Below, one piece after another: positions 8,927 through 51,285 of a stretch of 64,000 nt of DNA. Each line of letters opens with the position of its first letter. Within the stretch, counting starts at the first letter, position 1. The DNA lies in contig JAWQFM010000004.1 of the NCBI GenBank assembly GCA_033442325.1, positions 1,695,261 to 1,759,260 on the forward strand. Direction: 5' to 3'. The translations under genes and the position numbers were made by a program. The notes under the pieces were generated by a model. The model saw only the letters and a program-made list of their open reading frames with translations. It was not told the DNA's origin and made no database searches. Source of the stretch: Salpingoeca rosetta. Its lineage: Eukaryota; Protista; Choanoflagellata.

Positions 8927-9860
8927 TCAGCATCCTGGATCGATGACGAGCACAAACTCCGCGTTGGCGGGAGGAATGCAGTGGACAAGGCCATCATTCA
9001 CAACAAGCAAGCACGCCTCCTGATGCTGGTCGTTGATGTTGCCGTTAGGGGTGCAAGCACGCCGCCAGACCACTGCACTGTAATCGCTGCGTGTGGAGCT
9101 GTGCCGATGGCAAGCATCGTCGTCGAATGATCTGCTGGGACATTGTTGATGAGGTCGTTGCCTGCTTGTGAGGTCGCCTCCCGCACCACGCTTCGTGGGA
9201 TGCAGCAGTAGTGGATGATGCCATTTCTGGCTGGCGTGCCTCACCAGACAGCTGTGGTGGTGGTTCTTGAATCAATCGAGGATAGTGGATAGAGTGTCGT
9301 AGTCGCTGATAAGGGGCCCTGTCCTTGTTTGCAACCAGGGATGATTCAGCATGTAAATGAGGCCGTTGCTCGCTGGAACTGTGGTCGTTGCGTCGAACAG
9401 GGAGTGGATGGAAGGGATCGACGAAGGGCACAGATGCACGTCTCTGCGCACAGATCAAGTGGTTGTTGCTGTTTTTGTTGTCGGCCATTGCACCACCCAT
9501 GCCACGTTGCCATATCCCGTGTGGTTTGCTGAGGTCACGCACGTCACTTGCTGCTTCAGCGTGTCACACGATGGTGCGTTGTCTATGAGGCGTCCTCGCC
9601 ATTGGCTGATGGGTGCTCCTGCACCATATGTGCTCCATTCTCTGCTGCACTGGTGCAAGCACACGCTGTTGCTCATGTCCATCACGCCTGTTGACTGACT
9701 TGAGCCCATCAGTGGGATGGATGGTGTTGATGTGTTGATGTGTTGATGTGGAAGGGAAGGTGTCAACCTTGTGTCAACCAGAGCTGTGATCCTGCCCATC
9801 AACCACCTCGCTCGTTTTCTCTTGCACAACACATGGTCCTGCCACCACTGTGGTGCACCT
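8927..9860 (-). pseudogene. Decayed copy of the secreted 7-repeat beta-propeller family
   Basis: Fragments in shifting frames: EVV..QDHSSG..FHINT (N-terminal motif), GMGGAMADN..ASVPFVDP, QAGNDLINNVP, QWSGGVLAP/NGNI, and the family terminus DGLVHCIP..VLVIDPGC* ending at 8927. Confidence 0.75.
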
Positions 9861-12052
9861 GTCTGTGTCTGTGGCAAGAGCCATCAGTGCAGCAAACGAG
9901 CAAGAAGGCGAAGAAGCACACAGATGGCGTCCACATGCGTCGCAAGCAAGCGACAGAGCGAGCATGCACTGGCTGGCTTGTTGCGGCAGTGGAGAGTGTG
10001 TGCGACAACACAATAACTGTTGTGTGTATTGTGTATTGTTTTCGTTTTCTTTGTGCTGCAGGGCGGGAAAGTGCTTCCAAATCGGGGGGCAGGTGTTGCC
10101 AGAAACGCAAGGATTTTCCTTCTCTGTCAACATGGCAAGCAAAGAAGGAAACAAACAGTGTGGTGCGTTTTGTCAATGTGAGCGCCACTCTTTTCGCCAA
10201 CAAGAAGCAAAGGACAGAAAGCAAAAGGAAAGAAAACGAGCAAGCACACTGCGTGGATGGTTTGTGGATGCGAGAGTGGATGCGATCACAAAGAAGGCCT
10301 TCCTCGCGTGCACGCAAGCCAGCCAGCAAGCACTTCGTCGTGGTTGTGGTGCAACAAGAAGGACACCTGCTGCGCGTGTGTTATTGATCTGTTGCACAAG
10401 CAGTGGCAGCCACTCCACGATGCAGTGGGCAATGGAACCGTGCTCTTTGTGTCGCACACACACATGACGGTTCAAGAAGATGACACGTGCTGGACGTGTT
10501 CAGCGTGCTGTTGCTTTGAGAGTTTGCACATGAAGAAGGAGCAGGCAGCGCAAGGTAACAGCAATGTGTGCGTAGAAAGACAGTGTGTTGCAAAACACTC
10601 TACTCACTCCACTGACTGCTCCCACCAACCACTGCCTTGCAATCCGATCTGACCACCTTTCACACCACCCTGCTGCTACCATATCAGGAAGCATCTGCCA
10701 CAAGAACCAACCCCCTCCCCGACTCTCATGCAAGCGCCTGCTCAACGCTCGACCTCCAAAGCGCTCACAATGTAAGCCGGCTGCAGTCACGTCCCCGTTC
10801 ATCACTTCAATTCGTCCTCGATCACTCGCATGCGCACGCTCATGCACGCACACAAACGCACACATGTGACATTGCCACCACCACCACCTGCAGTCACACA
10901 GCGTGGGCGGCCGCAGGAGAGCAGACTGGGGATGAGCGTGGTTGAAGTGCCAAAGGAGGAGGGCAAAACAGCTCGTGCACGAAGCAGAGGACATGGCAGA
11001 GGGTACATCCATCCTCAGCAATCACACCAGCGCCACCACAATGAACGCGGCACCACTGCTGCAACCACTGCTTGGGGCGGCATCAGGCCCATTCCCACCA
11101 GCATTGCCTGCGCCTGTACATGGGCCAGCAGCGCCACCGTCTCTAACGCATGCCATGGTGCCGACATTGTCAACAACACCAGTCATCACAAGCACATTGC
11201 CGCCGCTGCAGCGGGATTGCAGTGCAGCCGCCAAAATGTCGACCTCATCCGCAGCAACGGCAACGACAGCAACAACAGCTGTGATGGCAGCAGAAGCAGC
11301 GGCAGCAGTAGGGCTTGTCCACCTTCCTTTCCTAACACGGTGCCACCGTTACCTCATGTCTGCGGCGACGGCTACAGCGACAGCGCCACGGCCGTTCAGG
11401 GGCACCCTTCTGTCGCGGACTCCCTTGATGGCATCACCATCATCCTCATCGTCGTCTTCTTCACCCCATCACAGTCATCAACAACAGCGGCAGAAGCAGC
11501 AACACCAGCAGCACCACCGGCGAGCACTGCTACACCACCAGTATCGCTCTCGGCATATGCAGCGCTTGCAGACGGGCAGCTGGGGACGGATGAGATTCGC
11601 TCGGCTGTCGGTAAGCAATACACACACCAGTGTGTTGTGGTTGTGGAGTCCAGCGCATGCTCGATGACACGCGTCGTGTGAGCTCACTCCTTTGTGTGTG
11701 TGTGTGTGTGTGTGTGTGTGTGTGTGTGTGTGTGTGTGTGTGTGTGTGTGTGTGTGTGTGTGTGTGTGTGTGTGCATGATTGAACGGGCTTTTGAATCCA
11801 AGCGCGCTTCGGGGGCAGCGACGACGATGCTCGCAAACATGGCCGGTTCAAAGTAGCAGACAGGCTGTGTGTGTCTGTGTCTGTGTCTGTCTGTGCGTGC
11901 GTATCTGTGTGTGTGTGTGTGGTGTGTGTGTGTCTGGCTGTCTGTGTGTGTGAATCGCCGCGCATGTGTACGCATGCACTTCGTCTCCTTCACTTCCCTC
12001 ATTCCCTCACGTCCTCTCCCGCGACGCACGCGCCTGCACTTGCAAACAGCTA

Positions 12053-12444
12053 TGGCGCATTCCTTTCCTGCGCCATACGACGGCACGGTGTACGTGGCAG
12101 ACTCATCAACGCAGTCTTCCACCGAGGAACAGACAGCGGTGCCTGGGCCACCAGCCGCGCAAGCTGTACAACACCGAGGCAGACGCACGCCGTGCACCTC
12201 AGGGGATGTGCCACAGCAGCAAGACGGCGTGTCGTGTGGCCTGTTTGCGCTGGCTTACGCCACACTGCCGGCTGCTGGCCTGCATCCGCTCGACTTGAAC
12301 TGCGTCAGCATGACGGCACACCAGCTGCGCACGTGGTACTTTCAGTGCGTGGCTGATCGGGAGGCAGACGTTGTGGAGCTGCTGCTCATGAAGCTGCTGC
12401 AAGGGGCACAAGTCAGCCCTCCTTGGCTGGTACTATCTGTGTGA
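12053..12444 (+). pseudogene. Ulp1/C48-type cysteine protease C-terminal fragment
   Basis: VYVADS and VPQQQDGVSCGLFALAYA match the C48 Asp and Gln-x5-Cys motifs. No clear upstream HW motif. Confidence 0.55.
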
Positions 12445-49700: not shown

Positions 49701-49713
49701 GCCTTTTGTTTGA
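40749..49713 (+). CDS. OCRL: OCRL/INPP5B-type inositol polyphosphate 5-phosphatase (PH-like - 5-phosphatase - ASH - RhoGAP-like), many exons
   Basis: [25 protein letters not shown]|[81 protein letters not shown] gap lies inside the gene. Confidence 0.93.
44620..45300. mobile_element. Possible non-autonomous insertion or structured RNA inside an OCRL intron
   Basis: About 650 bp of microsatellite-free, compositionally distinct sequence in intron 44494-45469, with imperfect inverted ends and internal hairpins. Confidence 0.3.
47869..48518. other. Assembly gap
   Basis: N run following a (GTT)n tract. Confidence 0.98.
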
Positions 49714-49959
49714 TGATGATGGCAACTGTAACAGTGGGCGGCGCTCACGGAAACCTTGTTTGCTGCGCAACGTTGTGATGTGCTGCCCTTGCCACTTGTG
49801 CTGTACAATAGAGCGAAAGAGAAGAGTGTAGGAAAGGAAGCGAGAAAAGGGAAGCGATCTGTGGGAGCTTTGGCACACCACATCAACTTCCACGTAATTA
49901 TTTTTTTCCGTCTTCCTCCACAACCCCAAACAAAACGCAAAACAAGACCACCAGCCAAG

Positions 49960-51285
49960 ATGAGGAGTCTGACGCCAGCCACTGTCGACGTTTTAGCCGT
50001 TTTGGTTGTATTCCTGGTTGTGTGCGTGTGCCGCGTCGAGGCCATCGCCACACCACCAACACCAAACAGGGCCAAGGTGGCGCAAGATGATAGCGGCGCG
50101 ATGCACGTCAATTCGAGTGACCCAGCGAATCAGCCCGTGTTCCTGAATGGCGTGGACGTCGTTTCGGAGGTTCAAACGCTGCGTGGAACCGTAGCGGCAC
50201 AGCAGAGCATGCTGCAGGCGTACCAGTCAACTGTTGAGGCGCAACAGAGCATGATCGCCGCACACAACAGCACGCTTCAAGCCCAACAGAGCACGATCGA
50301 AGCTCTTCGAGGCAGGGTGTGTGAGGCGACTGCCAGCACGTTTGGGCAGCTTAGCTCAGCAGGAAACAACAAGTGGCGTGGCGGGGGTGTGCTTGCCAGC
50401 AACGGTTTCATCTACGCTGCCCCTTACGACTCGCCCTCCGTGCTAATCATCGATCCCAGCACCAACACCGTTGACACGACCACAATCTCCGAACTTGGAA
50501 CAGACAGCTACAAGTGGGGTGGTGCTGTGCTGGCACACAACGGCCTCATCTACATGTTCCCATCAAACAGGGAGACAATGCTCATCATCAATCCAGACAC
50601 CAACACCGTTGACACCACAAGCATCCACTCGCTGGGATCTGGTGGAGGCAAGTGGTGGAGTGGTGTGGTGGCCAGCAACGGCCTCATCTTCGGCATCCCC
50701 TTCTTTGCCACCTCTGTGCTGATCATTGATCCAGATACCAACACAGCCGATATCACCACGCTGTCCGGACTGTCGAGCCAGGCATACAAATGGTATGGCG
50801 GTGTGCAAGCAGACAGCGGCCTCATCTACTGCTTTCCCTTCGTAGCTTCTTCTGTTCTCATCATCAATCCAGAGTCTCTTACAATGGACCTCACCACCAT
50901 CAGCGGCTTGGGCACGGGCAGCAAATGGTTTGGTGGCGTAATCACTGGCAACGGGCTCATCTACACCATCCCAGCATACTCTGCGACGACACTTGTCATC
51001 AATCCGGCCACCAACACCACCGCCGAGCTTGTCGTTGCAGATGCAACCGGCTCTTCGAAGTGGATCGGCGGCGTGCTTGCACCCAATGGCAACATCATTG
51101 GCATCCCACACACCTCCCCATCCGTCCTCATCATCGATCCAACCACCAATGCCACCGACACCACGACCATCAGCGACCTTGCAGGCGATAACAAGTGGTG
51201 GGGTGGCGTGCTCGCTCCAACCGGCCTCATCTACGGCATCCCAGACCATGCTGATTCCGTTCTCGTCATCGACCCGGGATGCTGA
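49960..51285 (+). CDS. Secreted 7-repeat beta-propeller protein with a coiled coil; closest paralog of the TIR receptor ectodomain
   Basis: Intronless. Signal VLAVLVVFLVVCVC, QDDSGAMHVNSSDP..LNGVDV, heptads AQQSMLQ/AQQSTIE, seven repeats, ends VLVIDPGC*. Confidence 0.9.
   Translation: MRSLTPATVDVLAVLVVFLVVCVCRVEAIATPPTPNRAKVAQDDSGAMHVNSSDPANQPVFLNGVDVVSEVQTLRGTVAAQQSMLQAYQSTVEAQQSMIAAHNSTLQAQQSTIEALRGRVCEATASTFGQLSSAGNNKWRGGGVLASNGFIYAAPYDSPSVLIIDPSTNTVDTTTISELGTDSYKWGGAVLAHNGLIYMFPSNRETMLIINPDTNTVDTTSIHSLGSGGGKWWSGVVASNGLIFGIPFFATSVLIIDPDTNTADITTLSGLSSQAYKWYGGVQADSGLIYCFPFVASSVLIINPESLTMDLTTISGLGTGSKWFGGVITGNGLIYTIPAYSATTLVINPATNTTAELVVADATGSSKWIGGVLAPNGNIIGIPHTSPSVLIIDPTTNATDTTTISDLAGDNKWWGGVLAPTGLIYGIPDHADSVLVIDPGC

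Follow-up and report, generated by a model that had tools for sequence, protein, structure and literature searches.

Seven-bladed propeller proteins of the choanoflagellate Salpingoeca rosetta: a large family of predicted secreted coiled-coil proteins and a predicted TIR membrane protein

Gene content of the window

The stretch analysed here (G000:C4:1695261-1759260), referred to below as the window, comprises 64 kb of the genome of the choanoflagellate Salpingoeca rosetta and contains a cluster of genes that share a C-terminal β-propeller. Three of them, genes A, B and D, encode predicted secreted coiled-coil proteins and the fourth, gene C or PTSG_02868, encodes a predicted membrane protein with a TIR domain; the same propeller module is thus common to both kinds of product, as had been noticed in a first-pass annotation made from the letters alone. 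A six-frame scan of the entire window with a hidden Markov model (HMM) profile of the propeller gave exactly four complete propellers, at 12834-13781(-), 15161-16090(-), 23897-24838(+) and 50335-51282(+), which together with a decayed relic found by HMM search and tblastn make up the five family members originally counted. Each propeller is a single uninterrupted open reading frame (ORF), in agreement with the earlier remark that these regions lack introns. Two runs of N, at 26979-27173 and 47870-48518, are intergenic and touch no family member, so that continuity of frame across them is irrelevant to any statement made here about the family; either run might conceal a further copy.

Gene A (12822-14516, minus strand) encodes a predicted signal peptide, a head (AEVVMEEDSTGAFHINTTDPLQQPVHVNGVDV), a coiled coil that extends over ∼190 residues and is made up of tandem units of 21 residues, a cysteine and the propeller at 12834-13781; it is the most divergent member, with 41-45% identity to the others. 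Gene B (15158-16393, minus strand) has the same order of parts, with a short coiled coil (∼25 residues) followed by Cys91 and the propeller at 15161-16090, as does gene D (49960-51285, plus strand), in which a coiled coil of about eight heptads and a cysteine precede the propeller at 50335-51282. Gene C (22830-24841, plus strand) consists of two exons and encodes in turn the TIR domain, a transmembrane helix and the propeller. Every intact member carries seven blades of 44-47 residues with the consensus KWxGGVLAxNGxIYxIPxxxxSVLIIDPxTNTxDTTTI, which bears out the seven repeats of about 45 residues initially described; the common ending VIDPGC, which had been attributed to all of them, is found in B, C and D, and A ends in VIDPGCTKA.

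Genes A, B and D each form one ORF from methionine to stop codon. Their N-termini combine a positively charged n-region, a hydrophobic core of 12-20 residues, small residues at positions -3 and -1 and a conserved (G/A)|EVV junction, features that fit a cleaved signal peptide. None of the three translations, begun at several start codons, had an exact match in the protein collection searched, and gene B is present letter for letter in the ESM Atlas. Public names of the family's genes are limited to 'hypothetical protein' or 'TIR domain-containing protein'.

The relic occupies 8930..9412 on the minus strand and retains approximately the last three blades in two frames: blade 7 (8930-9037), which ends in FVLVIDPGC and a stop codon, blade 6 (9049-9168) in a different frame, and a weaker piece at 9293-9412 (best tblastn E = 1.6e-6). 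HMM and tblastn searches of the region revealed nothing recognizable upstream of it. The pseudogene reported previously is therefore real, but what is left is a short relic and not a whole decayed gene.

Propeller fold

An AlphaFold2 model of gene B calculated with 84 homologues (mean predicted local distance difference test score, pLDDT, of 89.7) displays 28 strands in seven four-stranded sheets over residues 95-411, with the strand 97-104, which directly follows the coiled coil, closing the last blade. The top structural match is virginiamycin B lyase (Vgb; PDB code 2z2n; VIA-align Z of 30.4, root-mean-square deviation of 2.6 over 290 residues, sequence identity of 8%), followed by Escherichia coli YncE (PDB code 3vgz; Z of 25.1) and the leptospiral antigen Lp49 (PDB code 3bws; Z of 24.9); further seven-bladed neighbours include an archaeal S-layer YVTN propeller and the periplasmic sensor domains of Bacteroides hybrid two-component systems. 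At the sequence level, the YVTN repeat profile TIGR02276 scores 30.8 bits on B against a cut-off of 27.85 and DUF5074 scores 39.9 bits on PTSG_02868 against a cut-off of 27.2, and homologues bear DUF5074 or DUF6923. The repeat profiles and the closed fold of the model agree in predicting a YVTN-type seven-bladed propeller of the TIGR02276/DUF5074/DUF6923 kind, as the first reading had assumed. No characterized function was found in the literature for the YVTN/DUF5074/DUF6923 group.

The positions conserved in alignments of four and of 84 sequences are glycines, prolines, tryptophans, tyrosines and aliphatic residues of the scaffold, repeated in every blade. Outside the repeated IDP and TxD motifs, neither alignment contains a blade-specific invariant histidine, glutamate or aspartate, and no Pfam Vgb_lyase or SGL match was obtained at E up to 1. 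An assignment to these enzyme families was rejected on the strength of the missing profile match, the 8% identity to 2z2n and the lack of blade-specific invariant polar residues.

Head and coiled coil

The head that follows the signal peptide is about 30 residues in length and conforms to GEVxLxEDDxGAFHINTSDPxxQPVFVNG(V/M)(D/N)V, in which D, G, H, N, N and G are invariant in the alignment; in the model of B it is folded into short strands. The heptad region behind it varies greatly in length, from ∼25 residues in B to ∼190 in A, and is followed by an invariant cysteine, the single cysteine between coiled coil and propeller in 53 of 53 canonical copies. A word-indexed protein search gave no homologue of head and coiled coil, and a comparison with PDB sequences returned only chance-level matches to glucose-6-phosphate isomerase.

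Modelling three copies of residues 28-126 of D (99 residues), which span head and coiled coil, gave an ipSAE of 0.82 (0.81-0.82 across runs), compared with 0.02 for the best of three controls, with at least 95% agreement of contacts between runs and a partner pLDDT of at least 88. In calibration, 21 of 30 proteins known as one-chain pairs attained the ipSAE mark and none of 23 solved as single chains did so; for eukaryotic proteins the figures were 17 of 29 and none of 30 (only one of seven among those with no older solved relative), counts that were obtained with two copies and are only a rough guide to a three-chain model. In the trimer model, the a/d heptad contacts are unbroken over residues 32-92, with valine, leucine or isoleucine at a and mostly glutamine, histidine or leucine at d, and the heads contact each other through strands 13-16 and 25-28. 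The model supports a role of head and coiled coil in oligomerization, as a predicted parallel trimer, and the oligomeric state proposed earlier for the soluble forms is upheld as a prediction.

Family size and layout in the genome

Searched in six frames, the genome contains 140 matches to the propeller profile, of which more than 100 are near the full model length in a single open frame with no stops; these counts are lower bounds. About 42 matches, or around a third, lie on the contig that includes the window (C4, 2.5 Mb of the 55 Mb genome), and there are more arrays on contigs C25 and C35. The five copies of the window are a true local cluster, but they represent a small fraction of a family that ranks among the larger ones in the genome.

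A genome-wide HMM search had been suggested as a means of listing N-terminal partners, and for this purpose 50 loci were read, yielding 57 non-redundant full-length copies out of the more than 100. The canonical layout of predicted signal peptide, head, heptads, cysteine and propeller is present in 53 of the 57 and a GC C-terminus in 52; three copies have disrupted or unread N-termini, and a TIR domain with a transmembrane helix is found in one, PTSG_02868. When TIR and propeller matches were compared for proximity across the genome, no other clear case of this TIR subfamily fused to a propeller emerged. TIR genes of the same subfamily do lie within a few kb of propeller genes (C35:480193-480660, C35:543291-543719, C23:384316-384828 and C30:19274-19582); strand or order rules out fusion in these cases, which may represent the co-clustering of two expanded families.

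One further gene model combines a propeller with an unusual exon. In PTSG_10641 (P0179, L104:6001-9204, on a different contig), an exon of repeated tyrosine motifs (YDNN, YATA, YALT) is separated by an intron of ∼640 nucleotides containing a CA microsatellite from an exon equivalent to a canonical secreted copy; the product could be a type II receptor with phosphotyrosine docking sites, or the model could represent two merged genes.

Variable face of the propeller

Variability was analysed in 34 'crown' paralogues with 66-80% identity. It peaks at the three residues preceding KW, at the residue following W and at the two to four residues following IP. Given the four-stranded meander topology of a propeller blade, from which and not from coordinates the placement is made, these sites would correspond to the D-A and B-C loops and would lie on the same face, conventionally the top. 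Propellers usually bind their ligands on the top face. Residues abundant at the variable positions are Tyr, Phe, Trp, His, Asn, Ser and Gly.

The ratio of non-synonymous to synonymous rates (omega; Nei-Gojobori, 391 pairs) has a median of 0.93 at 28 D-A positions compared with 0.19 for the rest. In a parsimony count summed over blades, omega by register is 1.45 at -1 (before K), 0.92 at -2 and 0.82 at +18 (B-C loop), and 0.05-0.3 at scaffold positions. These values point to purifying selection on the scaffold and to either relaxed constraint or diversification in the loops, positive selection being not proven.

The TIR protein PTSG_02868

The translation of gene C is exactly that of the public protein PTSG_02868 (P0018, 612 residues). 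Exon 1 (22830-23306, plus strand) encodes the TIR domain (residues 22-159), which is predicted to be cytosolic. The intron (23307-23479, 173 nucleotides, GT..AG), identified by comparison of the sequence with the public protein, joins GKLK to EQTPNTL in frame. Exon 2 (23480-24841) encodes a linker, the juxtamembrane segment, a transmembrane helix of 20 residues (23672-23731), a stalk and the seven-bladed propeller (23897-24838), which terminates in VIDPGC. The juxtamembrane segment KRGCNWKRALR places five basic residues ahead of the helix, and the stalk behind it is acidic, rich in Gly/Pro and equipped with N-glycosylation sequons; by the positive-inside rule, a type II topology is predicted, with the TIR domain in the cytosol and the propeller outside the cell. 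PTSG_02868 keeps the C-terminal cysteine (Cys612, 24836-24838) and lacks the post-coil cysteine of the secreted copies.

The TIR assignment is borderline by profile on the protein (TIR_2, E of 5e-6 and 27.4 bits against a cut-off of 28; TIR, 20.3 against 21.3 bits), and TIR_2 reaches 29.3 bits, over its cut-off, in the six-frame genome search. The model of the domain (pLDDT of 82.6) has five β-α units in a flavodoxin-like arrangement, and the top 50 Foldseek matches are all TIR domains, headed by SARM1, IL-1RAcPb, RUN1 and PdTIR (E of 5e-5, template-modelling score of 0.5-0.6). Glu97, in the motif STFDEL, is invariant in 28 members of the subfamily, aligns with LEEL of the plant receptor Roq1 and lies in the model at the start of helix 94-103 (helix C), and by alignment and model it occupies the position of the catalytic glutamate of NAD+-cleaving TIR domains, activity being only predicted. 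A 2026 preprint reports that most eukaryotic TIR domains keep the catalytic glutamate and that one S. rosetta TIR protein makes cyclic ADP-ribose (cADPR); the protein assayed there is different from PTSG_02868.

Other members of the TIR subfamily are fused to WD40, ankyrin, armadillo, Sel1, MORN, SH2 or claudin-like modules. The closest parallel is PTSG_02597 (P0121), which lies outside the window on the minus strand of the same contig (C4, ∼551.3-553.3 kb) and has a TIR domain 71% identical to that of PTSG_02868 and a juxtamembrane and transmembrane segment that is 58% identical; the transmembrane cassette is common to these two proteins only. The order of parts in PTSG_02597 is TIR domain, SH2-like domain, juxtamembrane and transmembrane segment and an ectodomain resembling leucine-rich repeats (LRR; Receptor-L/BspA-like). 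It is a second type II TIR membrane protein and in effect an inverted Toll-like receptor (TLR) with an SH2 domain.

Propeller trees place PTSG_02868 inside the youngest S. rosetta clade, a clade of ten rows made up of secreted paralogues (support of 99 in the Shimodaira-Hasegawa-like approximate likelihood-ratio test, SH-aLRT). It is sister to a canonical secreted copy located at C4:1369331 (support 93), with D next. Since the receptor is nested among secreted copies, the exchange of N-termini that had been proposed on first reading is right, and the breakpoint falls between the post-coil cysteine and the TFGQLG motif. The propeller of D had also been singled out as collinear with and especially similar to that of the receptor: collinear it is, with an identity of 76.7%, but about ten other paralogues reach 73-76%. 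Over 42 predicted variable-face positions, the receptor has 31% of residues in common with D, and none of the 56 sampled copies exceeds 43%, while scaffold positions are ∼80% shared with soluble copies. The low identity on the variable face and the equal closeness to some ten paralogues mean that no soluble partner can be named, and the pairing of the receptor with a specific soluble sensor, which had been a central suggestion of the first-pass annotation, finds no support. The receptor and soluble forms may share a ligand class, but the sequence comparison gives no backing to a matched soluble sensor or decoy.

Origin and relatives

A profile search of 1.84 billion representative sequences retrieved 5745 clusters with E no higher than 1e-3, of which 1558 had E no higher than 1e-30; many belong to giant multi-propeller proteins. 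Near relatives in named genomes belong mostly to Leptospirales and other Spirochaetota (up to 58% identity over 300 residues), with single relatives in Flavobacterium, Acinetobacter and metagenome-assembled genomes of Myxococcota; structural neighbours in the Atlas are largely from Uroviricota and Spirochaetota. Viral contigs carry tandem paralogues with a common N-terminal region of ∼120 residues and differing propellers. Lipoboxes, Ig-like domains or fibre-like N-termini occur in the prokaryotic and viral forms, together with a tail of the form Y(F/L)NK(F/L/Y), architectures that suggest surface or receptor-binding roles. PHROGs gave no functional name for the viral relatives, which might be called tail fibres on the basis of their architecture.

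The eukaryotic members found are all from choanoflagellates (S. rosetta, Microstomoeca roanoka, Hartaetosiga gracilis, Salpingoeca kvevrii, the uncultured UC4 and environmental sequences), in a search that was not exhaustive for other eukaryotes. In M. roanoka (P0117), H. gracilis (P0073) and UC4 (P0205) the propeller is joined to other parts: three tandem heads with a Cys-rich region, a different Cys-rich N-terminal domain, and a type I anchor with a Ser/Pro stalk and cytoplasmic tail.

In a tree of 87 rows, which is unrooted and built from short, consensus-like blades, the 37 choanoflagellate rows form one group (SH-aLRT 97); some of the Spirochaetota and one viral contig of 383 kb fall beside it, and the other bacteria and phages are placed elsewhere. 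The single choanoflagellate group and the intronless genes fit a single transfer between prokaryotes or viruses and an early choanoflagellate, an event that we consider somewhat probable from these sequences, with its direction unproven.

Neighbouring features

An ORF of 1188 residues at 4668-8234(+) adjoins the cluster; it encodes an NWD1-like winged helix and many WD40 repeats, corresponding to the C-terminal part of a STAND/NACHT-WD40-type protein. At 29498-33331(-) lies a single-ORF Roco-type protein of 1277 residues with a Roc GTPase domain and a weak kinase-like match, and two inverted paralogous ORFs, at 27966-29039(+) and 36688-37848(-), share a C-terminal region of ∼250 residues (HAIAVISGL...LRPEW) that has no Pfam match. 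Microsatellites of the (CA)n/(GT)n type are very frequent, flanking the family genes and filling intergenic DNA (for example at 8480-8540, 11690-11780, 25990-26300 and 42200-42330).

Functional implications

The features described above lead us to propose the following scheme. The standard product of the family would be a secreted chain in which the head and a parallel coiled coil (Ile/Val/Leu at a, Gln at d) join three chains. Each chain would end in a seven-bladed propeller that binds ligand on one face through copy-specific D-A and B-C loops, the three propellers of a trimer would confer avidity and the repertoire of copies would cover many ligands, most likely microbial or other cell-surface molecules. 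One propeller of the youngest clade would have been joined behind a cassette of TIR domain, juxtamembrane segment and transmembrane helix to give PTSG_02868, in which ligand-driven clustering of the ectodomains might bring the TIR domains together; with its glutamate kept, the TIR domain could then signal by NAD+ cleavage or by TIR-TIR scaffolding. We infer secretion, the trimer, binding, the ligand class, TIR activity and any cooperation between soluble and membrane forms, and the soluble forms may act as lectins, opsonins or decoys. That the family consists of diversified multivalent extracellular binding proteins, with the propeller as the ligand-binding head and with a TIR link in PTSG_02868, we hold to have an even chance of being correct. 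A more far-reaching version is improbable: that a bacterivorous choanoflagellate took a surface or receptor-binding propeller from spirochaete-like bacteria or their phages and built from it more than 100 secreted trimeric recognition proteins, each copy with its own binding face, and, on one or more occasions, an NAD+-cleaving TIR form of reversed topology, amounting to a pre-animal system of humoral and cellular pattern recognition independent of LRR-based TLRs.

Several observations weigh against the proposed scheme. A crude site-wise parsimony test returned just two sites with a nominal non-synonymous excess, so that diversifying selection is not separated from relaxed constraint. The layout was read in 57 of more than 100 copies, and the chain number of three was assumed in modelling and not compared with a dimer or tetramer. 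The best structural match of the propeller is an enzyme. Finally, in about a quarter of each of three raw RNA-seq runs no genuine read fell on PTSG_02868 (22300-25200), the few that were placed there being 30-nucleotide pieces of paralogues; 14 further runs of contigs presumed to derive from RNA hold next to none of the sampled words of the gene, and among the contigs searched it is encoded by the genome record alone and by no transcript contig. Contigs of one DNA run retain the intron. In view of the missing RNA reads, what speaks for the splice and for the fusion is the public gene model together with the GT..AG intron and the example of the paralogue PTSG_02597.

The family might alternatively be composed of matrix, theca, collar, adhesive or gamete-recognition proteins, with the TIR fusion a one-off by-product of exon shuffling that has no link to the soluble forms. 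The secreted oligomeric layout with a C-terminal propeller fits matrix and adhesion proteins such as olfactomedins as well, the variable-face residues of the receptor are poorly matched by every soluble copy, other choanoflagellates attach the propeller to different Cys-rich or membrane-anchored parts, and the receptor was not detected in RNA. However, a set of over 100 copies whose loops on one face are copy-specific and have an omega near or above 1 is more typical of recognition repertoires than of structural proteins, and PTSG_02597, in which the same TIR-transmembrane cassette carries an ectodomain resembling LRR, suggests that the cassette serves in sensing; on balance we find a matrix or adhesive function rather unlikely, though the least unlikely of the alternatives. 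The structural likeness to virginiamycin B lyase raises the further possibility of secreted enzymes, in which propellers acting as Vgb-like lyases or SMP-30-like lactonases would degrade bacterial products and the coiled coil would only multimerize them. Some sources label homologues 'streptogramin lyase' or 'SMP-30/gluconolactonase/LRE-like' and Atlas neighbours carry the Vgb family name, but the identity to Vgb and the profile searches do not bear this out, conservation across the 84 homologues is confined to the repeated scaffold with no blade-specific His/Glu/Asp set, and the face that holds the active sites of propellers is here the most variable part. We regard an enzymatic role as highly improbable.

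A narrower doubt concerns PTSG_02868 itself, which would not be a functional TIR receptor if annotation had merged a TIR gene with a neighbouring gene for a membrane-anchored propeller starting at the methionine at 23600, ahead of the transmembrane helix, or if the gene were silent or decaying. The lack of RNA reads and of a transcript contig is in keeping with either case, and PTSG_10641 is a comparably doubtful merged model. Against this, the canonical intron preserves the reading frame, and no stop interrupts the 40 codons from its acceptor to the internal methionine; PTSG_02597 carries the homologous juxtamembrane and transmembrane segment inside its own protein, behind the same TIR domain, and the TIR homology between the two stops precisely at the exon 1 boundary. 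The ORFs are intact and the ectodomain scaffold is under purifying selection, as in paralogues, with an omega of 0.21-0.25. We therefore think it quite probable that the TIR exon and the transmembrane-propeller exon belong to one gene, and unlikely that PTSG_02868 is a merged or silent gene and not a TIR receptor.

Choanoflagellates serve as a reference point for the pre-animal state. If the proposal of extracellular binding proteins with a TIR-linked form is true, S. rosetta has TIR receptors of reversed topology with interchangeable ectodomains, a propeller in PTSG_02868 and an LRR-like domain in PTSG_02597, and one of its largest gene families consists of secreted, face-variable trimeric binding proteins. 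This would bear on the rise of innate recognition repertoires, in which gene-family expansion and exon shuffling, and possibly genes acquired from prey or phage, would have a part. Should the proteins belong to a matrix or serve adhesion instead, they would still be a large undescribed component of the choanoflagellate cell surface. The system is testable, as S. rosetta grows in culture with defined bacteria and is amenable to CRISPR editing. Literature searches with the locus tags, with DUF5074 and DUF6923 and with choanoflagellate propeller and TIR terms yielded no description of the family, of the TIR-transmembrane-propeller architecture or of the locus tags; a paper on TRPW deals with a cytosolic WD40 propeller that is unrelated. 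The main survey of TIR proteins in choanoflagellates was confined to combinations of LRR, kinase and TIR (PMC6040629), and Pfam-keyed surveys of this kind are blind to an ectodomain that has no strong Pfam match.

Comparison with known systems

Like Toll-like and interleukin-1 receptors, PTSG_02868 has one transmembrane segment between an extracellular domain built from repeats and a TIR domain predicted to be cytosolic. It differs from them in that its TIR domain is N-terminal, giving a predicted type II protein, belongs to a choanoflagellate subfamily and keeps the catalytic-type glutamate, and in that the ectodomain is a propeller rather than LRR or Ig domains. The choanoflagellate TLRs and Kinase-TLRs described to date have the order LRR, transmembrane segment, (kinase), TIR (Richter et al., 2018; PMC6040629). 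PTSG_02868 was not classed as a Toll-like receptor, since an LRR ectodomain, a type I topology and a C-terminal TIR domain are all absent from it.

The soluble forms had been likened to collectins and ficolins. The resemblance holds for the general layout alone, namely predicted secretion, an α-helical neck (here modelled as a trimer), putative C-terminal recognition heads and, as proposed, multivalent binding; the C-terminal head is a propeller here, and an N-terminal β head precedes the coiled coil. In A, B and D, Pfam and sequence inspection revealed neither a Gly-X-Y run or other collagen region nor any C-type lectin or fibrinogen-like domain, and membership of either group was rejected. 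With the YVTN propellers of bacteria and phages, the proteins share the repeat family, the modelled seven-bladed fold and a predicted extracellular or surface location; the choanoflagellate forms differ in ending in GC and in carrying a head and coiled coil or a TIR domain and transmembrane helix in place of the prokaryotic and viral N-termini. Fibrinogen-related proteins (FREPs) and propeller lectins of the tachylectin type are likewise large, clustered, secreted families that evolve by birth and death and vary on a putative binding surface, but there is no homology, the Tachylectin Pfam match to homologues falling below its cut-off.

The nearest analogy is offered by the olfactomedin family. 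In secreted forms such as myocilin and noelin, a signal peptide and an oligomerizing coiled coil precede a C-terminal propeller, and the receptor latrophilin uses the same propeller in its ectodomain. Here too the likeness is one of design and not of homology, as the OLF propeller is five-bladed and unrelated in sequence and no Pfam OLF match was obtained. The S. rosetta proteins have seven blades and are far more numerous, and the receptor partner, an adhesion G-protein-coupled receptor in the olfactomedin family, is in their case a TIR protein.

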